A stretch of 64,000 nucleotides of DNA, from contig NW_003314295.1 of the NCBI RefSeq assembly GCF_000143415.4, positions 1,732,631 through 1,796,630 of the forward strand. The letters run 5' to 3'. The first letter of the stretch is position 1; each line of letters starts with the position of its first letter. Positions 25,158 through 54,365 of this stretch are shown in pieces. A program made the translations under genes and the position numbers. The notes beneath the pieces were generated by a model. It did no database searches. It saw nothing but the letters and a program-made list of their open reading frames with translations, and was not told the DNA's origin. The stretch comes from Selaginella moellendorffii (Eukaryota > Plantae > Lycopodiophyta).

Positions 25158-26947
25158 TCTAGAATGGTGGAAGCATTAAGCTACCGTAAATTGCTTTTAA
25201 GTTTTTGATAGTAATTACAAGTATTATAATGTCACTTTTAACAAAAGAGGGTTTTTTTATTGTTCATAACGTTAATTAATGTCACAACAATTGTAAAGTT
25301 CTTAGTTAACCTCATTTGCCATGATAATTCCAAACTAAATTGGTTTTTACTGTAATAACTAATTAATTGATAAGCTTTGGAGTAATTCCATTGTTCTCAA
25401 GTTGATCGACTTTCGTTATTTAGTTGCTTGATACTTTGCATGAACCTTGATGGCAAGTTAGTGAAGTATTTAATTCATTATTTGATTGTGAGTATAATTT
25501 TTTTTCTAATGAGAGTATAATTTTCATATTGGCATGGAATGCATAAATAAATTTTTTTATCTCCTTGTTAATATGAGAAAAATTTCAAATGGTAAACCAC
25601 ATATCTATATAAAAAAATTATAAAAGTTAAAATATTAATTTATTGTGAACTTTGTTTTCACTGAAAATATATCCATGGCATCCATTAAAGAATGTAAGTC
25701 CTCACAAATTTTGAGGGTAAACCTGGAAGAAGTTAGTTCTCTTCCACACCAAAAGAAGAGAGTATAAATTTAAAAGGGATGTAATGTCGTAAATTTCAAA
25801 AGTTTGCATTTCTAGAATTTTTAATTGTTATAGCAAAACATGTTTACCTCAATGTTTTTTTGGTGTAGCTTTGTACAATCGTGATGAACGAGTCTATGGC
25901 TTGTGAAAAAAACCGGAAAATTTAATTATATAAATTCCAAAAGAAATTTTTATGTAACTTTAACAATAATTTTTTTTTAATATTATTTTAGATCTTTTTT
26001 ATATTTTTATCTAGTGTGTGCTAGGTAGAATCACAAAAACTAGGTAACCCTCTAGAATGGTGGAAGCATCAAGTTACGCCACAAATTGTTCCCAAACTCT
26101 TGATAGTAGCCACAAGTGTTATAATGCTACTTTTGGCAAAAGAGGGTATTTTTATTATTCATAAGGTTATACAATTAAATTTTAGGAGTTAATGCCACAA
26201 CAATTGTAAAATTCTCAGTTAGCCTCATTTGCCATGGTAATTCCATTGTTTTCAACTATATTAATTTTTGCCGTAATAATTAATTGCTTGATAGGCTTTG
26301 GAGTAACTCCACTGTTCTTAAATTGATTGACTTTCATTACTTAGTTCCTTGATACTTTGCATGAACCTTGATGATAAGTTGGTGAAATATTTAAATCATT
26401 ATTTGATTGTTAGTGTAATTTTCTTTCCAATGAGAGTATAGTTTCCATATTGGCATGGAATGCATAAATAAATTGTTTTGTCTCCTTTTTAATATGAGAA
26501 AAATTTTAAATAGTAAACCACATATCTATATAAAAAAATTATAAAAGTTAAAATATTGATTCACTTGTGAACTTTGTTTTCACTGAAAATACATCTATGA
26601 CATCCATGGTAGAATATAAGTCCTCACAAACTTTGAGGTTAGATTTGGAATAAGTTAGCTCTCTTCCATACCAAAAGAAGAAAGTATAAATTTAAAAGGG
26701 ATGTAATGTTGTAAATTTCAAGAGTTTGCATTTCTAGGGTTTTTAATTTCTATAGAGAAATGCATTTATCTTAATGTTTTTTTTTGTGTAGCCTTGTTCA
26801 AGTGTGATAAATGAGTCTATAGCTTACGAAAATAACATAAAATTTAATTATATAAATTCCAAAATAAATTTTTATATAATTTTAATAAAAATTTAATTTT
26901 TTAATGTTATTTTAGATCTTTTTTATCTTTCTACCTAGTGTGTGCTA
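25158..26947. repeat. Tandem direct duplication of a ~880-bp AT-rich unit
   Basis: Units start ctagaatggtggaagcat (about 25159 and 26052), end ctagtgtgtgcta (about 26022 and 26947), and are collinear throughout. Confidence 0.92.
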
Positions 26948-28140
26948 ATTTATTTTTGATAGCATAAGAATGCACTTCCAATATTAAATTAAAACTATGA
27001 TCTTCGCAAAGTTTAATCATATTACATTTTAAGTAAATATACATTATGGTTATTGTTAACGAGGGGATCAGTGTTAAAATGTAAAATTATTTCTACTTTA
27101 TTTAGCATTAAAATGTAAGTCCTTTAGTATAAATAATAATAGATGTCGAACTCTCACCCAACTCATTATACCAAAATGTAAAAATCAAGAAGCCTTTTAT
27201 TGAATCACTCTTATACATTTTAATAATTGGATTTTACAAAATACTTATTTAAGAAATAAACTTTTCTCCCACTTGTTAATATTATATGCCTTTTTAATAG
27301 AAAAAAAAGATTCAAAATTGATGGTATATTAATGATTAAGGGTTGTGCATTTTTCTTCCCTAAGACTTTATAATTGAGTTAAATTTGATAAAAGTGCATA
27401 AAGGTTGATTATCTGATTTATAGCATGCCATTATTTTATGGATTTATTGTGGGTAGCTACATAATGGCCATAAAAAACTAGATAAAAAGAAATTTAATCC
27501 ATGTTTCAATTGAAAACTTTTGATCATAAATTTGTAAATTTTAAATTTTTTTTTATTATTGATTTTGTATATTTATTTTAAGCTCTCACATTACTAAACA
27601 TAAATGGTTTTAATTGTCCTTAAGGAATGCTTAGATTTTCAAGAGTACTATCAAAAGGTTCATACAACATTAGTTAATCCAGTATTCATATTTCAAATTT
27701 ATTTTAGATTTTTCATTATATTGGTCAATGTATGTTCAAATTATCTTTTATTACCATATATTACTATCTATTTAGCTTTACATCACGTGGAAAAAATTGT
27801 AAGTAACAAAAGACAGCAGTTAATTAGGGTTTAAATCTTTTTTTAATTGGTTAATTGTCTTGGGATACATTGAAGTTATCTATATACTACTTTTTGAATT
27901 AAGTAATATTAGGTTGAGTGACTTGTTTGGAAATTTTTGGTTTAATATACTAAATATAAAGGGTGAGTCGGGCTTTTGAAATTTTTAACTTCTATTTATG
28001 AAAGTATTAATTTATAAGGAAGCATAATAAATTATAAATAACAAAAGAAAAAAACTTAAGAGCAGTTTATTAGAGTTCAAACAATAAATTACAATCCAAA
28101 ACAAAAAGTTAAAGTGTCATTGGGTTTAAATAGTATTAAG

Positions 28141-31810: not shown

Positions 31811-32652
31811 AATAAGCCATCAATGAAAATAAACTATCACTAAAGATTGTCAATCACTTTTTTATTAGAGATGCATAGTTATTATTTAAAAATAATTCAC
31901 TTGGTGAATGACAAATTATTCATTATCAATCAAGAAAAACTTCTAATAAAAAATGATAATCAATTATCACCAAAAATAACAAGATGAGGAAATTAACTCA
32001 AACATCAAATCTAATGAGCTATCCATAAAAGCACAATGATAAACTAGATGATCTGTAAAATATCAGGAGCCAAAACATTTAAAGTCTTGAAAAGCCACTA
32101 TAGAGACAACAATTATTGAACACTGCTCAGAGACAAAATTTACAATTGCAAAAAACATTGCTAAGCCAAATTCACTTGGTGCTTAAGAAAGTTCATAAAT
32201 TATAAACTGAAATAAATGAATTTCCTAGAACCCCATTTAGCCCTGTGGATGGCAAGGAAGGATTGAATGCCAAGGCGCGCAGTGGCAGCATTGATGCTGC
32301 AGCCATAACATTAACCCTGCAAAATATAAAATATTTGGAAGCTCATACTTGTCTATTGCCTTGTGTCCAAAAAAATATATGTATATTTTAAGAACTCACT
32401 ATTGTTCACAAAAATCTGTGTGGCCTATTCTCAAAAATATCTTGGGAAAGAATGTTAATTTACAGAGAAAAAGTATTTTTAAATTTTTGGCCTCTGCAGA
32501 GAGAAGGAAAATTTTGATTAGAATTTCCCAACCATTTTGACTGACCACATTTATTATTCTATTGACTCCAAGTGCACATACATATGCCAAGTTGGAGGAC
32601 ACCATAAGAACACAAAAAGGGCAAGTAACTCGGAGTGTCTCTGCTTTGCTTC

Positions 32653-34722
32653 ATGAGTTCAGGCATAGTGATTGTTCTTCTCGTTTTTTGCTTCATCTGC
32701 TCTTTCTCGAATGCAAAAGAGGAGTCATCTGTGCTTTTGAGCTTCAAAAACTCTGTGGACGATCCATCTAAAACTCTGTCCAGCTGGAATACAAGTGTTA
32801 ACTTCTGCCAGCACTGGAACGGCATAGCCTGCACGGCGAAAGGCCGAGTTTCCATTCTTGCACTTGAGAATTTAGCACTTCCAGGGTCGCTCTTGGTTTC
32901 CACAATCAACTCTTTGCCCTTCTTACTCGAGCTATCTGTCTTGGGAAGCAACTTCACTGATGCTTTGAATTCCTCCAAACAAGCCTGCTCACTTGAGTTG
33001 ATCAAACTGTCGGGTAATCAAAACATGTCTTTCACGACCAATTTTGATGCTATGCTAGTCTGCAAAGGTCTAAAGATTCTCAATCTTTCAAACAATCAAA
33101 TTGAGGGTAAGATTCAGGTGCCAATAGGCAGCGTTTTGGAAGTAATGGATCTCTCCAACAACTTATTTAGTGGGGAGCTTCCCCACTTACTGTTTTCACA
33201 GTGCAAGAGATTGAGATATCTAGACCTCTCCCACAATCATCTCACCGGAGAACTTCCAGAGGATCTTTTTAAAAATTGTACTAATCTGCAGCAAATCTCT
33301 CTGGCCTCCAACAGCTTCCGTGGCACATCATTTCCCTCTATTCACTCCTTGCCATCGCTAGAATTTCTCGACGCTAGCTTCAACAACTTCACAGGTCCGG
33401 TTCCTGCAATTCATGAGAACCTCAAGCATCTTAATCTTAGCTCAAACAATTTCAGCACAACCAGGGAAACCTTATGTCCATCGCTCAACTCCTCGAGGCT
33501 GGAGAGCTTGATCCTGGTCAACAACAAGCTCACCGGAAGGGTATTGGACAGCGTCATGAATTGCTCTAGCCTTAGGATGTTGGATTTGAGCTTCAATTCG
33601 TTAACAGGAGAGATTCCAAGCAGCATATGCAAACAACTTCCCAAGCTCGAGCACTTTCTCGCGTGGGTAAACAACCTCCAGGGGCAGCTTCCCCAAAACC
33701 TTGCATCGTGCAGTAACCTCACCGAGATCATCCTCACTTTCAACAATCTCAGTGGAAACATTCCACCTGAGCTGTTGTCCAGCACAAAGAGCCTCCAATG
33801 GTTATGCTTGAGTAATAACAGATTGAGTGGAGAGTTGCCTGATTCATTGGAGCATGCAAAGGAGATGATAGTGCTTCAGCTGAGCAACAACAGCCTGCAG
33901 GGCAAACTGCCCAGCAACATGACCATGCAGACGATAGATCTCCGTGGAAACAGCTTGAGCGGGAGGATTTCAGCCTCTTTGAATGGTTTCACAGGCACCA
34001 AATCTGCCAAATCCAACGTTGCTGGGACGAGCTTGAAGCTAGCAACAGGGATAAAAACATGTGGTTGCATCGACAACATTTTTATCTTACAAGGAATCTC
34101 TTTGGAAGAAATGGAGAGGCTACTTTCTGCCAAGAGCGGTGGCTGCAAATGCTCCATAAGTTTCCTTCCAGCAAGCTTTTATGGTTTCTCCACCACCAGC
34201 CCTTCCTTCATCGATGTTTCATTCAATAGACTGGTGGGAGACATCCCGCGGGAGCTTGGGAGCATGCAGGACGCCAATTACCTCAGTGTTGCACATAACT
34301 TCCTGTCCGGAACAATCCCCGTGGAGCTCGGGTATCTCAAGAAAGTGATAGGGATGGACTTGTCATTCAATGATCTCCAAGGAAGCATTCCAAGCTCGTT
34401 TTCGTCTCTCCAGTCCCTCACAGGGTTGAATGTGTCGCATAACAACTTGTCCGGTCCAATTCCACAGGGTGGTCAGCTTTGGACACTTGATCCGAGCAGC
34501 TATGCAGGAAATGCCGGTCTGTGTGGTTTCCCTCTAGCGTCATGCATCACATCACCACCAACAGCGACGAATCGTGCTGACCATGGCGATGGCGATGGTG
34601 GATTGGGAGCAGTTCTTGCGGTGAGCTTTGCAATTGGGGTGCTGGTCTCGGTTATCTCCTGTACAATGGTAGTCACCATTGATAGTAGGAAACGCTTTGT
34701 GGAGAGAGCTTGCTATGGATGA
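32653..34722 (+). CDS. Intronless LRR receptor-like protein (signal peptide, LRRNT, LRRs, island domain, 4 LRRs, Cys cap, TM, short tail; no kinase)
   Basis: LLSFK..DP..LSSW..C.HWNGIAC cap, LxxLxLSxNxLxGxIP repeats, GNAGLCGFPL, TM LGAVLAVSFAIGVLVSVI. Confidence 0.93.
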   Translation: MSSGIVIVLLVFCFICSFSNAKEESSVLLSFKNSVDDPSKTLSSWNTSVNFCQHWNGIACTAKGRVSILALENLALPGSLLVSTINSLPFLLELSVLGSNFTDALNSSKQACSLELIKLSGNQNMSFTTNFDAMLVCKGLKILNLSNNQIEGKIQVPIGSVLEVMDLSNNLFSGELPHLLFSQCKRLRYLDLSHNHLTGELPEDLFKNCTNLQQISLASNSFRGTSFPSIHSLPSLEFLDASFNNFTGPVPAIHENLKHLNLSSNNFSTTRETLCPSLNSSRLESLILVNNKLTGRVLDSVMNCSSLRMLDLSFNSLTGEIPSSICKQLPKLEHFLAWVNNLQGQLPQNLASCSNLTEIILTFNNLSGNIPPELLSSTKSLQWLCLSNNRLSGELPDSLEHAKEMIVLQLSNNSLQGKLPSNMTMQTIDLRGNSLSGRISASLNGFTGTKSAKSNVAGTSLKLATGIKTCGCIDNIFILQGISLEEMERLLSAKSGGCKCSISFLPASFYGFSTTSPSFIDVSFNRLVGDIPRELGSMQDANYLSVAHNFLSGTIPVELGYLKKVIGMDLSFNDLQGSIPSSFSSLQSLTGLNVSHNNLSGPIPQGGQLWTLDPSSYAGNAGLCGFPLASCITSPPTATNRADHGDGDGGLGAVLAVSFAIGVLVSVISCTMVVTIDSRKRFVERACYG

Positions 34723-35360
34723 TGGACACACCGAATAAAAAAGAGAGCCCTCAGACTAAGGCCATGTTTTCTCCACACACAACCGAGCGCTCTCTTTCTC
34801 GACAAATCCATTCGCAGCAAAGAGACGAGACCCACAAAGGAAACGACCCAACACTCGTTCTCGAGCCCAGTCTCGTAAGGAGACCAAACAAATGCTCGAT
34901 CAAACAAGCCAGGGCCGCCGCCAATGCGAAACCCCTCTTACCGCAACTTCATCCCTGCCGAGAAAACGAGAGCGCCCAGCCACAAATTCGGTGTGGTTAA
35001 GACAGTGGTCATCACCGGGCTGATGAAATAGATCTCAGCGAAAAGGATTTCCTCACGCTTCCAGGAGCACTGGGAAAGATAACGCAGTGAAAAAACCATC
35101 ACAGATCTGCTAGTAAAAGGGGCATCTCAGAAACCAGGATTAGCAGCTGGTATACCGTGCATCTGCATCGGATCCACAGAGAGACCCATGAAAGCGCAAG
35201 GATAAACAAGGAAATCCTCCCCGATGCCCAAAGAACCCTAGCTACTGACCAAGAACCCTAGTCCCAATAGCGAATTTTATACAGCCAAGAACCCTAATTC
35301 AAGGGCCTCCAAAATTGGAGTAAGAAGATATTTAAAAACGAAAGTTTCTTCGGCCGTAAG

Positions 35361-36004
35361 TTATCTTCTCGCTCGCAGCAATTCCTCGATGACATCTAAT
35401 CGCGTCTCCACTCCGGAGATTCTTGACATGATCGCCTGCCAAAGAGAGCTAGATCGAAAGAGAAAAAAGAAAAACCCATGGATCATACCTCTTCCTTCAT
35501 CCTCCTCTCGTCTTCCTTCCTCGCCTCCTCCTTTCTCTTGGCTTCCTCCGAGCGCGCGTTCCTCGACACCTCGAAAATCACCACTGCTCCTCCAACCTGG
35601 AAAGAATTTTTGGGAAGAATCTCTCAATGCGAAAAGGAATCGAATCGAAGAGTGGCACTTTACTGACCCCAAAAATGAAGAACTCGCCCAGCATCTCCGA
35701 CGCGGCTTGCACGGCCTTCTCCTCGTTGAGCGGCCGGATTTCCACATCCGTGGCGTGGCCATAGATCCGCCTTTGCAGATTCACGCTAAACCTGTGGTTG
35801 AGCTGCAAGAAATCGCGACAACAAGCGCGAGGAGCCAGAGATTTCGAGCGAAATATCGCAATGCCACCGCCATACCTGCGCCATTTTGCTGATCGACTCG
35901 CGAAACCTGGGATGATGCGCCGCCGTCTTCTTCAACCGATTCGCCACGGGCTTGCTCAGCGTCCGCAATGCCAGAGTGGCCAGCTTCATCAATGGGAAGA
36001 TCAT
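35361..36004 (-). CDS. OPA3-like protein, 4 exons
   Basis: FPLMKLATLALRTLSKPVANRLK and IRPLNEEKAVQAASEMLGEFFIF OPA3-family motifs with GT-AG introns. Confidence 0.92.
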
Positions 36005-36152
36005 CGCACCGCATTGACCGGATCGGCCGCGCCAATTCAATCTATACTCGCTACTAGCGCCATCCCAGCAGCTTCTACCATCGCTTCCAACATAAACCCT
36101 AAACTTCGAGAGATTAAAGAGTAAACACATTTATTAGATTAAGCTATCGCGT

Positions 36153-38726
36153 TTAAGCCAGCGTTCTAAACCATGACAGCGTTTTGCTCAGCGCTTGGTC
36201 CAAAATCCGTGAGCCTTGCTCGATGCCTGGCAGGAAAACCCAAGAGTTTTTCAAGTTTTTCGCTTAGATTTCTTGCTTCGATCGATTGAAAAGGAAGAAC
36301 TTACCGAGATCTACAGCCACTCTGTGACCACACATCATTCCAGAGAAGGCTACCGCAATGACTCCTTGGCCGGGAAAGCAGCTATCTCCAACGCAGTATA
36401 GTCCTTCCACTGCCTGGAACATCGACTGTGATGAATCCAATCTATCTTCCAGAATAAAAAGCTCTACAGGTTTTTCGCAAACTCACTGTTGTGTTGAATG
36501 GCATCCCGAGAAGTCCTTTGGGCTTTCCAACAGGGATTGGTCCGTAAGTTCCTTGGTCTCGAGCGAGATAGCGTCTGTGAGTTTTAGGCGTCCCGACCTT
36601 TGACACACGAAAGTTACAAAGTCTAGCGTGAGAGAAATGAAAACAAGGAAGGAAACTTGAGAGCCTGCTCGTACCTCTCGAAGAACTGTTGCGTCCTTGA
36701 GACCGGGAAACAGTTTCGCTTCCAGTCTCTTAACGATCACATCGGCCACAGCCTCCTTCTTGTCATTGTACTCCGAGCTACTTAACCCCTGCGATATCAT
36801 CAGAAATTTTAGTCTTTTCTTTGAAAGCTTGTGTGAAAGCTATGGAGCTCCACGTACTTGCCAATCATCGGCCCATGCGGTGGTAAATATGTGAAGAATA
36901 TGGCGATCCTCTGGAGCTAGCGAGGGATCCAAAACAGTGGGAATGCTCAAGAAGATCGTACCATAAGGCTTCTCGAGGTTATCCCACGAGTCCTACAAGA
37001 GAAAACCAAAGACTCAAGCTAGAAGAAATGAAAAGCCCGAGTAGCATACCTCGAGAACGAGATGATGGCACTCGGTTCCTTGAGGCAAAACTTCGGCTTT
37101 CACTCCCATATGTATTGAGAGAAACGATGGAGCTTTCTTGTAGACTGTCTGGAAGCGTCGTTCTTCGTCTGGCATTTCAGAATCGAGCAGCTTTTCTGGT
37201 GATCGAAGCAAACGCAAGGTCATATTCTAGAAACCAAATTCACCATGATAGTCGAAAACAGTACCAAAAGTATCCCATCGCGTAGCATTGGAGATGACTG
37301 TTTTGCCAAGCAATCGTGTTCCATCCGCTAGTTGCACGCCAACCTGAACACCTGAAGCGACCTCACACTCGTTAAACAATCTTGCAAACCAACAGAAGCG
37401 ACAGAAGGGAAAAATATATACAAAGTGGAACGAAAAGAGTGAAAGCTCACCGCTTTGTTTTGCTCCATCAAGATTTTCTTCACGTTGGACTTGTAGCGAA
37501 TTTCGCCTCCTCTCTCAATCAGGCCGTCTGCCAGCTCTTGTGCTATCAATCCAACACCTCCAACGGGATAGTTGATCCCTCCGAAGTGTCGATCGCAAAT
37601 CACCTACAAAGCAAAGAGTGTTTGCTATAATCTGTTCGTCTTCTTTGGAAAGAAGTGTTACCATGCTCGCATTGATCATTGGTGTACACAACGCGTCGAC
37701 GGTACTGACGAGGAAGCACTAGAACAAAATCACAGTTAAGCCGAAACTGGAAAAAAAAAAAGTTCTAAAGCTTACTTCGGTATCTATAAACGACAGCAAA
37801 ACTGGATCTTTGATGTACTTCCTCGCAATATCACCAGCATTTTGGGGAAGATAGTACGCTGCGCGAAACAAAAAATGAGAAAAACCAATGTCTAGAATCG
37901 AGTTTTTCAACTCACCAAGAGTCAAGCAAGCAAGTGGGTTTCTGAAAAACTGGCCGAAAAGGTAGAGCGGCTCCTCGAGAGATTTAAGCTCCAGCGAATT
38001 CAATGCGTTAAAAACCTGTGCATGGATGGTTCGTCGACGAGGAAACAACGAAAAGCGAGCAAAAAAAACCTTCCAGCATTCTCCGTAGAAGCCTCGTATT
38101 CCTTTCTCTTCGTGTGGAAACTGGTCGACAAGCTCGCCGATGAAATCCTCGTAGTCTCGATGAACTCTCACGGACAAGTTGTTTGGCATATGGTAGTGGA
38201 CAGTGGTGGGATCGGGTATGAGCTCCAACTTTCGTCCGACAGCAGCCAAGGCACGAGTTATCAGATTGATCGACCCCTGGATGGAGCAAGAACAAAAAAG
38301 AGTTGGAACTCTTCTCAAGAACAAACTTTGTCCACTTGCCTTGTCGCTGAAACCAAACATGACGGACGATCCAACATCGAAAGTGTAGCCATCTCGCTTG
38401 AAAAACCCAGCACTTCCACCAGGAATCACGTACTTCTCTAGCAGCAGCACCGAAGCGCCCCGGATTGCGAGTTGACTTGCTGCAACCAAGCCCCCGATTC
38501 CAGCGCCAACCACAATCGCATCGTACCTCTTCTCCGCGAAGAATCCCTGGCTTCCATCGCTAGGAGCTGCCGAGAAGGAAGCTTGGCTCGTGGAAACAGC
38601 CGCCGCAGCAAAACCGGCGTGGGTGCCAAGACGCACGGATCTCTGCTTGCTTGGAGCTCCAAAACAAGGCAAAGGACTCGTGGGTCTTGCGGAGACTCCA
38701 CAAGGAGCGAGAATTGCCGGTGCCAT
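36153..38726 (-). CDS. CRTISO: Carotenoid isomerase, multi-exon
   Basis: [73 protein letters not shown]-terminal WFRTLA*. Confidence 0.96.
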
Positions 38727-51940: not shown

Positions 51941-52004
51941 GTAGAGCTTAGCTATCTCCAAAATAAAAGGAAACTTTGATAGAGTTTGATCTATCTCGCG
52001 CTTG

Positions 52005-52310
52005 CTAGAATGGCCATAGCTCCTGCGATCCTGTGGCTCCATCTCCATAGTGCGAGCAAGGATCCGCCCCTTGTTGACAACGCTTGCCTTCCTCCACAAC
52101 AAGCTCATCGATGCCTACGGCGGGCGAGAGCTGTTTCCATGCCATGCCCAATGCGAGTGAGAATGCCTTCACCTGAATGTTCATTGTTTCAGCATACAAG
52201 CAAAATGGACCTGAAAGTGGCCTGAGCCATGATCTTGGCAAAGAGCAAAATATCTATTTCTGTATCTTGGACCACTATTTTTTATGACAAAAGAGGGTAT
52301 TTAGCAATTT
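52005..52310 (+). pseudogene. Condensed shadow of the 5' part of PPR 55869-58424
   Basis: gccttcctccacaacaagctcatcgatgcctacggc is identical to 55971-56006; tgtatcttggaccac matches 56351. Confidence 0.9.
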
Positions 52311-52329
52311 TTGCTCCAGGTGATAATTT

Positions 52330-53850
52330 GTGTTGGGTGGTAGAAAATATGCTTGAATCTTCTAGGACTTTTTCAGTTGTTATTTATTTAGATTATGTTG
52401 TGTTTTTTAGTATATTCTTATTCTCCTATCATAAGATTAATTTTGTGTTTATAAATTATACGCTTACTTATAATAACAAACTTTCAACAAACATAAGGAT
52501 ACACATTTTTAAGATAACTTTTATAACTAATTCTCTAACACTCTAAAGTATGAAATAGTAAAGTTGTGAAAACTTATAATATGATTAGTATAAAGAAGTT
52601 ATCTGATTACTTACAAAGATATAACTACATGATTACTCATAAAGATTGAAAAAAAAGTTACATTTAGAATACTTATTTAGCTCTCGTATAAACTTTTATT
52701 TTAGCAAATTTGAGAATTTTTAACTAAATTACACATTAATAAATTTAATTAATAATAGTATTAAACAAAAAGTAAAACATAATTTTTGTTGTATATTAGC
52801 TCATATTGACACTATTATTTATAGTTTATATTGTCCTTGTAACAACCAACAATATTAAATGACCAAAATCTATACAAACAAATCTATTTTATATAACTCT
52901 ACTACAAAATAATAATCATCCAAATCATATTTAAACATACCCTTAAAAATTTCAAATAGTTCTTCAAAGTTATGCATTTTATGTATATAACTATATAAAA
53001 AATTTATTTAATAAGGTTTTTTATTGTTTAACCAACTCATAGAAAAACATTCTATAAACTTGTTTATATTTTAATTTCAGTTTTTATATTTCATATAGAA
53101 AAAAGATTAGGATTTTAATTATGCATTTGTTAGAATTAATTTTTAGCAGATTGCATATGTATGATTTTATGAATATTTTTTCAATAATTTTTGTAAAAGT
53201 TTTACTTTTGGAAATTTTGATTCATATATTTGAATGTATAAAGATTAACTTTGGATAAGTTTAGTTTTCTTAAATTATATGGATATTACATAATAAATAA
53301 TTACTCTCATTTAGTAATTTTTATTCTTTAAAGTCTTCTAAAGGAATAAATATGTTATAATTAGATTTAAGATTGATTAAAATATAATTAAATTTACTAA
53401 TTGAGCCCATCAACTTAAAATTTATATGGTCAAAATCAATAAAGAATAATCTTCTTTAAAATTTTTGTGTTAAAAAAATTTAATTTGTCAAAGTGATTAA
53501 TCTTTGTTTACATTTTTTTGATTGCCTTCTAAAGGAACTACCAACCTTTATTGTTGTTAAATCAATAAATTTTATAGTGGTAATAATCCCTTATGGTGTT
53601 GTAGTAATTAACAAACTAAATGATTATTTTCAGACATATTAAATTATATTATTTTTAAGAAAAATTTAACTAAAAAATTAAATATATATTAACATTAAAA
53701 ATTATGTTCAATTGAAAAATATCCTAAAATATACTTACATTTTCTAAATAAATTCTTATATTGAATCAACATTAATAATTTTGACATAATTTCATAGACA
53801 ATTCTTCTTATATAAAATAGGTATGTTTGTGAAATTTAAATTTTCCATGA
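52330..53850. other. AT-rich block lying between the 5' and 3' PPR shadows
   Basis: Very low GC, almost no CpG. Confidence 0.75.
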
Positions 53851-53859
53851 ACACCCTAG

Positions 53860-54365
53860 GTTGAATATCTTGGAATGCCATTACTACCACAATGGTCTTA
53901 CTGAGCTAGTTGTTAATCTAGATGCCCAACTCAACCAATGCTCATCCCAAAAGAAAGTTTTGCAACACAAAAGATCACTTTGTGTTGATGGCTCTTGACT
54001 TTTCTTTGTTTTGCACCAAGCTACACTTTTGTGAACTTACAATTGTATGTTCTAACTTTACACATTTCAATTTAAGATTTGGAGTTTGATAAAATATAAA
54101 TGAGTTTCAAAAAAGGAAATTTTTTGGCTGTTTTAAATGCTAGCTTAACAATAGCCCTGCCACGTCATCAATTGAGCGTTTCGATTAGCTGGCTAGGTGA
54201 TCGTGCTGAGCAAACTAAATGTAACCACAAGCAAAAGTTGATTAAGCTTTTTCACTTCAATGCTCTCCGTTTGATGTCCTGGACAAAAACTGGTGTGCGA
54301 GCTTCTGCCAGGTTTCACGGCTCCTTTGACTGTGTCGCTCAACTCCTTGGCTCTTTTTCGCAGCT
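53860..54365 (+). pseudogene. Shadow of the PPR 3' end and the PPR/UGT junction (57940-58550)
   Basis: 53860-54031 matches 57940-58163; 54228-54365 matches 58407-58553. Confidence 0.88.

Follow-up and report, generated by a model that had tools for sequence, protein, structure and literature searches.

Does a lycophyte keep the receptor lineage to which BRI1 belongs? Selaginella is stated to have no homolog of BRI1 or of the BRI1-like (BRL) proteins (Cheon 2013; Zheng 2022), and the initial annotation of the DNA analyzed here gave canonical BRI1 receptors as absent from lycophytes, in line with this literature, while proposing a kinase-less receptor-like protein (RLP) with a BRI1/BRL-like island domain at 33982-34200. 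This DNA is a stretch of 64,000 nucleotides from Selaginella moellendorffii (contig NW_003314295.1, positions 1,732,631 to 1,796,630), referred to below as the window. On its plus strand, an open reading frame (ORF) runs from 32635 (GTG) to 34722, and its first ATG, at 32653, opens an intronless gene for a protein of 689 amino acids. Transcripts of this intact gene are present, and its product is a kinase-less leucine-rich repeat (LRR) receptor-like protein with about 20 LRRs, an island and a single transmembrane (TM) helix. Our comparisons show the presence in a lycophyte of the BRI1/BRL ectodomain lineage, expressed, under purifying selection, kinase-less and with a remodelled ligand pocket, which corrects the history of the BRI1/BRL gene family.

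Placement of the ectodomain and its island

In a phmmer search of all PDB sequences, the protein matched BRL3 best (1.3e-108), followed by BRL1 (3.8e-107), BRI1 (about 5e-104) and BRL2 (4e-100), with PSKR1 at 3.5e-60; the comparison with the PSKR/PSY1R group was made with the PDB entry of PSKR1 alone. A single HMMER stretch on BRL3 covered residues 142-644 of the query. Since total LRR scores are inflated by repeat matches, collinearity through the island is more telling. A profile of the last 311 ectodomain residues of the Selaginella proteins aligned in one stretch through the island (positions 2-304) only on BRI1, BRL1, BRL2 and BRL3; on PSKR1 and on the receptor-like protein RXEG1, the alignment began only after the island.

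Maximum-likelihood (ML) trees were built from the last 315 ectodomain residues, with ten island-bearing RLPs and kinases of LRR subfamilies XI/XII as outgroups (support is given as ultrafast bootstrap/Shimodaira-Hasegawa-like approximate likelihood ratio test, SH-aLRT). Nine Selaginella proteins, all kinase-less, formed a clade (96/88), as did the fern (Adiantum) and seed-plant BRI1, BRL1/3 and BRL2 proteins (100/99), and the two clades were united with 99/97 support (100/99 in a smaller, earlier set). This grouping was retained when the island columns were removed (94 SH-aLRT), and the ten RLPs formed their own clade (99/98) apart from it. The lycophyte clade is sister to the euphyllophyte clade, so that the gene tree mirrors the species tree. 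In these trees, the kinase-bearing BRI1/BRL receptors of ferns and seed plants have as their sister group a clade specific to Selaginella, with at least nine kinase-less members from several loci plus alleles. The BRI1/BRL-like character proposed in the initial annotation is thus supported for the ectodomain: by the PDB ranking, the collinear profile and the ML trees, it falls, including the position of its island, in the BRI1/BRL lineage and not with PSKR or generic RLPs.

Two other searches were of limited use for this placement. A representative-sequence search for the family was swamped by giant multi-LRR proteins, yielding more Selaginella members and one fern BRL. A word search with residues 436-640 returned mostly generic LRR kinases and RLPs, which repeatedly matched the four LRRs and did not discriminate between families; it was the source of the RLP outgroups.

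The island was compared separately. A hidden Markov model (HMM) of 113 BRI1/BRL islands gave the window island 5.6 bits, a score matched by 2 of 500 shuffles; among the paralogous islands, that of P0007 reached 5.5 bits (0/500 shuffles) and that of P0001 2.5 bits (14/500), and that of P0004 was not significant. Alignment with hhalign put columns 26-51 against columns 27-52, in register (P 0.0026). When an HMM of the Selaginella islands was run against 230 full-length LRR proteins, the top eleven were all BRI1/BRL proteins, matched inside their islands at a constant offset; the best match fell inside the island in 47 of the 117 island-bearing BRI1/BRL proteins, and the 113 other LRR proteins, among them the RLPs, all remained at or below -0.4 bits (Mann-Whitney p 1e-6). 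Selaginella and BRI1/BRL islands share, in register, a cysteine pair and the core N..F.(A/Q)GI..E.L. The lysine motifs Kx5Y and Yx8KG were found in none of the four Selaginella islands versus nine of ten control RLPs, so that the window island is not of the RLP type. We read it as homologous to the BRI1/BRL island but much diverged from it.

Residues 330-640 were modelled with AlphaFold from 97 alignment rows, mostly BRI1/BRL, giving a mean predicted local distance difference test score (pLDDT) of 85.5, with 50-80 in the island. The model superposed on BRI1, BRL1 and BRL3 with Z of 34-35 and a root mean square deviation of 1.7-2.0 Å over 297-302 of 311 residues; the residues superposed on other receptors numbered 249-265 for PSKR1, 246-263 for RXEG1 and 234 for MIK2. 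The BRI1-like fold of the island is not independent evidence, because the model borrows it from the BRI1/BRL rows of the alignment. A query of the ESM Atlas with the island returned generic LRR clusters only, below 0.9.

A transcribed gene without a kinase

The layout of the gene is as follows, all features lying on the plus strand.

32586..35236, plus strand: span of the RNA-assembly contigs from four runs, with a 5' untranslated region (UTR) of about 67 nt, the coding sequence and about 0.5 kb of 3' UTR; no plus-strand splice downstream
32653..34722, plus strand: coding sequence of the LRR receptor-like protein, stop included (ORF; BRL3/BRI1 ectodomains collinear over residues 22-638; gapless cover by RNA contigs)
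32653..32715, plus strand: predicted signal peptide MSSGIVIVLLVFCFICSFSNA (hydrophobic N-terminus, second Kyte-Doolittle peak at residue 1; putative cleavage site)
32719..32835, plus strand: LRRNT_2 N-terminal cap (Pfam PF08263, E 2.2e-10)
32845..33981, plus strand: about 16 LRRs preceding the island, where BRI1 has 21 (repeat parse and Pfam LRR families)
33982..34200, plus strand: island of 73 amino acids, residues 444-516, with four cysteines and the conserved core C.D.....QGI.L......L......C (alignments, HMM, hhalign)
34201..34488, plus strand: four C-terminal LRRs (C3 region), starting at residues 517, 541, 565 and 589 (repeat parse; island domain plus four LRRs, ID+4LRR, as in Ngou 2024)
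34474..34485, plus strand: QLWT, residues 608-611, which forms the QxxT/S loop in the last LRR, a SERK-contact motif (alignment; role per PMC10834447)
34489..34602, plus strand: C-terminal cap GNAGLCGFPLASC and Asp/Gly-rich outer juxtamembrane segment (repeat parse, motif count)
34603..34680, plus strand: TM helix, residues 651-676, with small-xxx-small motifs and no strict GxxxG within (Kyte-Doolittle maximum at residues 650-656; motif count)
34681..34719, plus strand: kinase-less cytoplasmic tail of 13 amino acids, DSRKRFVERACYG (ORF, Pfam, tblastn; conserved in the paralog P0001)

The strings quoted for the island region in the initial annotation, SNVAGTSLKLATGIKTCGCIDNIFILQGISLEEMERLLSAKSGGC, FIDVSFNRLVGDIPRELGSM and GQLWTL..YAGNAGLCGFPLASC, all occur in the translation, and the coordinates given there correspond to residues 444-516, where the LRR register is broken. 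Exactly four LRRs had been proposed after the island, and the repeat parse gives four, followed by the cap and the TM helix. The short tail was also recognized correctly, except that it measures 13 residues instead of about 15.

A kinase was not found by any of the searches made. Pfam recognized LRRNT_2 and LRR families only in the 689-residue protein, with no kinase domain. In tblastn searches with four full-length BRI1/BRL kinases, the ectodomain alone was matched (32665-34710), with no kinase elsewhere in the 64-kb window, and the same queries recovered the kinase at a control locus. No kinase similarity was detected by tblastn within the 6-10 kb flanks of three paralog loci, and Pfam found no kinase in 11 further Selaginella members.

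The gene was present in 20 public runs from 10 studies. Contigs from four of the runs span 32586 to about 35236 and pass the stop codon unspliced, and none of them contains a plus-strand joint leaving the gene. The joints found downstream, between 35434 and 37776, are all CT..AC and therefore belong to minus-strand genes; as the introns of these neighboring genes have been removed, the contigs are RNA assemblies. The earlier statement that no kinase follows is thereby borne out, also with respect to splicing onto a kinase downstream. A single low-depth RNA contig from one run (X4) skips 61 nt inside the coding sequence (33391-33453, GT..AG); such a skip would shift the frame and may therefore reflect an infrequent splicing error or a minor isoform.

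The closest database proteins are kinase-less proteins of S. moellendorffii. One of them, P0001, is an 86% identical paralog on another scaffold, with flanks dissimilar to the window, and it keeps the tail and the stop codon. Between the two genes, the nonsynonymous rate (dN) was 0.067 and the synonymous rate (dS) 0.274, giving a dN/dS of 0.25; by region, dN/dS was 0.37 in the island, about 0.2 in the LRRs and 0.15 in the juxtamembrane segment, TM helix and tail. Both copies have thus stayed intact after duplicating, and the absence of a kinase is older than the duplication. An exhaustive search added further Selaginella members (P0258, P0281, P0287, P0300, P0305, P0353 and P0371, with their cluster mates), and neither a kinase nor PF20141, the Pfam family of the brassinosteroid receptor island domain, was found in any of those scanned.

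Another reference protein, P0003, is 97% identical to the window protein over 391 amino acids and ends in ...LSNRVA. A 14-nt deletion at 33817-33830 (AACAGATTGAGTGG) followed by TGA would yield this ending, a frameshift deduced from the protein end only. P0003 is probably the other allele, from a frameshifted haplotype, and such a null allele in the plant that was sequenced suggests that the paralogs are redundant. Contigs from run X1 are interrupted at 33789/33869, which is what a heterozygous indel would be expected to cause.

Two further observations concern the paralogs. About 1.6 kb upstream of the P0001 gene, at L001:4265-4381, lies a 119-bp fragment 81% identical to window positions 32622-32738, a stray partial gene start. 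P0005 and P0004 (GL377566.1, L003:10001-12380) are two models of one paralog, P0005 being without about 36 residues of the island core; this reflects either an intron annotated within the island or an island-less isoform.

A remodelled pocket and possible modes of action

The initial annotation suggested that the protein might sense a steroid or other small ligand. The brassinolide-contact positions of BRI1 were compared in an alignment guided by the Theobroma BRI1 ortholog, with the position numbers taken to be those of the published BRI1 structures. The window residues at these positions are listed after those of BRI1.

I540 to V
I563 to Q
W564 to T
Y597 to L, conservative, still hydrophobic
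Y599 to L, conservative, still hydrophobic
G611 to C
G613 to D
Y642 to F, conservative
G644 to P
H645 to A
S647 to F
M657 to S
F658 to F, the sole identity among the pocket positions
I706 to G

None of the four Selaginella proteins in the alignment keeps W564. Most contact positions are replaced, and BRL2 of Arabidopsis, despite an island that is much better conserved, reportedly does not act as a brassinosteroid receptor; classical brassinosteroid binding is therefore unlikely. On these substitutions, the steroid sensing proposed earlier is unlikely as well, and the window gene is probably not a classical steroid sensor.

The loop of the last LRR is conserved. It is kept as QLWT in the window protein, which we take to correspond to QFET of BRI1 with its T750, and the motif is also kept in P0001, P0004, P0007, P0281 and P0353. 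BRI1, PSKR and RLPs bind SERKs by means of the QxxT/S loop (Ngou 2024, PMC10834447). SERK/BAK1 homologs exist in Selaginella, including a BAK1 homolog with 73% identity; SERKs are reported from embryophytes as well as Zygnematophyceae, and SOBIR1 from embryophytes (Ngou 2024, PMC10834447).

The explanation that we favor, with a probability of roughly 60%, is that of an expressed kinase-less protein of the BRL lineage with a diverged island and a remodelled pocket, which would bind a ligand, probably not a brassinosteroid, recruit a SERK and signal through a kinase in trans after a lineage-specific kinase loss. The protein would sit in the plasma membrane, and its ligand, probably neither brassinolide nor castasterone, would occupy the groove that separates the island from the inner surface of the LRRs. 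A SERK co-receptor could be recruited through the conserved surface of the last four LRRs with the QxxT loop, and kinase activity would then be supplied in trans by the SERK, perhaps together with an additional adaptor kinase. Loss of the receptor's own kinase most likely took place in the Selaginella lineage, prior to the divergence of the paralogs. Loss is likelier than an ancestral kinase-less state because kinase-bearing BRLs have been reported in some mosses, with loss inferred elsewhere (Zheng 2022).

Several results weigh against this explanation. Searched by itself against the PDB, whether as a single sequence or as a four-sequence profile, the island gave no usable match, and PF20141 matched none of the four Selaginella islands scanned apart at E<=1-10; the same model gave 110.8 bits for a BRI1-type island, 73.1 bits for a BRL2-type island and 50 bits for a fern BRL. 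The BRI1/BRL-like island of the initial annotation consequently holds with regard to its weak in-register similarity and the first rank of BRI1/BRL among the 230 LRR proteins, but not with regard to a PF20141 or PDB match of the island by itself. In an AlphaFold control with the four Selaginella rows only, the island was left unmodelled (pLDDT 24-48). The sister position, the place within LRR receptor-like kinase (LRR-RLK) subfamily Xb and the choice between a kinase lost and a kinase never gained are not fixed by the trees, because PSKR, PSY1R, EMS1, NILR1 and bryophyte BRLs were absent from them. The hallmarks of RLPs for the use of SOBIR1 are weak, with three Asp before the TM helix, GDGDG outside the helix and small-xxx-small motifs only inside it; control RLPs had 1-4 GxxxG motifs and 3-9 acidic residues in the TM helix and outer juxtamembrane segment, respectively. 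As the TM helix lacks GxxxG, the use of a SOBIR1-like adaptor is uncertain. Finally, P0003 is apparently frameshifted, and the gene may therefore be dispensable or redundant.

The main competing explanation, which we consider rather unlikely, is that the protein does not signal itself and acts as a decoy or negative regulator, titrating the ligand or SERK co-receptors. The lack of a kinase, a 13-residue tail without a recognizable motif, the weakness of the SOBIR1 hallmarks, the conserved SERK-contact loop, the divergent islands of several paralogs and the tolerance of a likely null allele would all be compatible with such a role. The TM helix and tail are, however, the part most constrained between the paralogs (dN/dS 0.15), which fits contact with a membrane partner better than a passive decoy.

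The view of the initial annotation, in which a BRI1-like ectodomain of ancestral type would stand alone, perceive a steroid such as a brassinosteroid or a similar small ligand and depend on a co-receptor for signaling, is improbable. Such a protein would explain the brassinosteroid response of Selaginella without BRI1, as the plant elongates under brassinosteroid, yet a BRI1 homolog is reportedly absent. The ectodomain lineage, the BRI1-like length (73 amino acids) and position of the island, the retention of F658, the mild changes of Y642 to F and I540 to V, the hydrophobic leucines at Y597 and Y599 and the conserved QxxT loop are in line with this proposal. In the sampled tree, moreover, the Selaginella clade and the next outgroup, the RLPs, are both kinase-less, which is compatible with an RLP-first model (Ngou 2024, PMC10834447). 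The clade, together with a SERK and a separate kinase, might then detect a steroid or some other ligand that is small and lipophilic, and might even retain a condition without kinase that came before the BRI1-type receptor kinases, a scenario that we likewise regard as improbable. Pocket and scaffold residues are replaced at I563, W564, G611, G613, G644, H645, S647, M657 and I706, the numbering again being presumed; PF20141 fails on all four Selaginella islands while scoring 50-111 bits on fern BRL, BRL2-type and BRI1-type islands; BRL2, with its better-conserved island, is reported not to be a receptor for brassinosteroid; and the kinase-bearing BRLs reported in some mosses favor loss over an ancestral state.

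We give equally little credit to a decaying, functionless remnant of a BRL receptor gene after kinase loss. The P0003 allele, which stops at residue 391 as a deletion of 33817-33830 would predict, and the highly diverged island could be taken as signs of decay. They are countered by the intact 689-residue ORF, by a dN/dS of 0.25 over a dS of 0.27 against an equally intact paralog, by transcription in runs from 10 studies and by the architecture shared among at least nine intact kinase-less clade members. That the missing kinase is an artefact of annotation or assembly, with its exon elsewhere or spliced on, is very improbable, as nothing was found in its favor save the one low-depth contig with the 61-nt skip inside the coding sequence, whereas no kinase similarity occurs in 64 kb, contigs of four runs cross the stop unspliced without a plus-strand joint out of the gene, three paralog loci are kinase-less within their 6-10 kb flanks and P0001 conserves the tail and stop.

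Known receptor systems and the surrounding DNA

With BRI1, BRL1, BRL2 and BRL3 (subfamily Xb), the window protein shares a collinear ectodomain, an island of about 70 amino acids before the last four LRRs, the island cysteine pair and GI..E.L core, the QxxT SERK loop and its position as sister clade in the trees. It differs from them in having no kinase beyond the juxtamembrane segment and 13-residue tail, about 20 LRRs instead of 25, an island unseen by PF20141 and replacements at most brassinolide-contact residues. PSKR1, also of subfamily Xb, likewise carries its island ahead of the last four LRRs and works with a SERK co-receptor; unlike BRI1/BRL, it matched at 3.5e-60 versus 1e-108, its alignment breaks at the island and it accommodates 249-265 of the 311 model residues versus 297-302 for BRI1.

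Among kinase-less proteins, the RLP counterparts of BRI1/BRL (Ngou 2024, Nat Commun 15:308, PMC10834447) resemble the window protein in their BRI1/BRL-like ectodomain with ID+4LRR. These counterparts are described as highly similar to BRL1/BRL3, retain the brassinosteroid-binding residues and have an unknown function (PMC10834447). In contrast, the Selaginella clade is old and multi-gene, lies outside all euphyllophyte BRLs and has lost the pocket residues, in a genome reportedly without a kinase-bearing BRL. Three angiosperm proteins, P0014, P0029 and P0222 (including Shorea and Sesbania), are also kinase-less, carry a good PF20141 island and are nested in the BRI1 or BRL2 clades; they are either recent truncations of the type described by Ngou 2024 or incomplete gene models. 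The immune LRR-RLPs (Cf-9, RLP23, RXEG1, EIX2) have the same order of signal peptide, LRRs, island, four LRRs, juxtamembrane segment, TM helix and short tail, depend on kinases in trans and use the same QxxT/S SERK loop (PMC10834447). Unlike these, the Selaginella islands lack Kx5Y/Yx8KG, the TM helix lacks GxxxG and the trees put the Selaginella proteins with the BRLs.

Our literature search on the evolution of brassinosteroid receptors found no paper describing the kinase-less Selaginella clade. At least one survey of these receptors chose its candidates by the presence of a kinase domain, and other papers on their evolution used kinase-bearing Selaginella proteins as an outgroup. In RefSeq, proteins of the clade bear the names 'BRI1', 'BRI1-like 2' and 'BRI1-like 3', given by similarity. 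The clade may be a natural example of how a lineage of Xb receptor kinases persists as RLPs, which bears on the question of a common origin of RLPs and receptor-like kinases (Ngou 2024, PMC10834447). Its members are also candidates for the unexplained brassinosteroid response of Selaginella, though the sequence argues against classical steroid binding.

Downstream of the receptor gene lies a convergent OPA3-like gene on the minus strand (exons 35311-36225), whose transcript overlaps or abuts that of the receptor tail to tail. Single RNA contigs join the 3' UTR of the receptor to the 3' end of this gene (window 34634-36108). The G+C content is 25% in two 2-kb blocks of the window, 26001-28000 and 52001-54000, and 40-57% in the rest.

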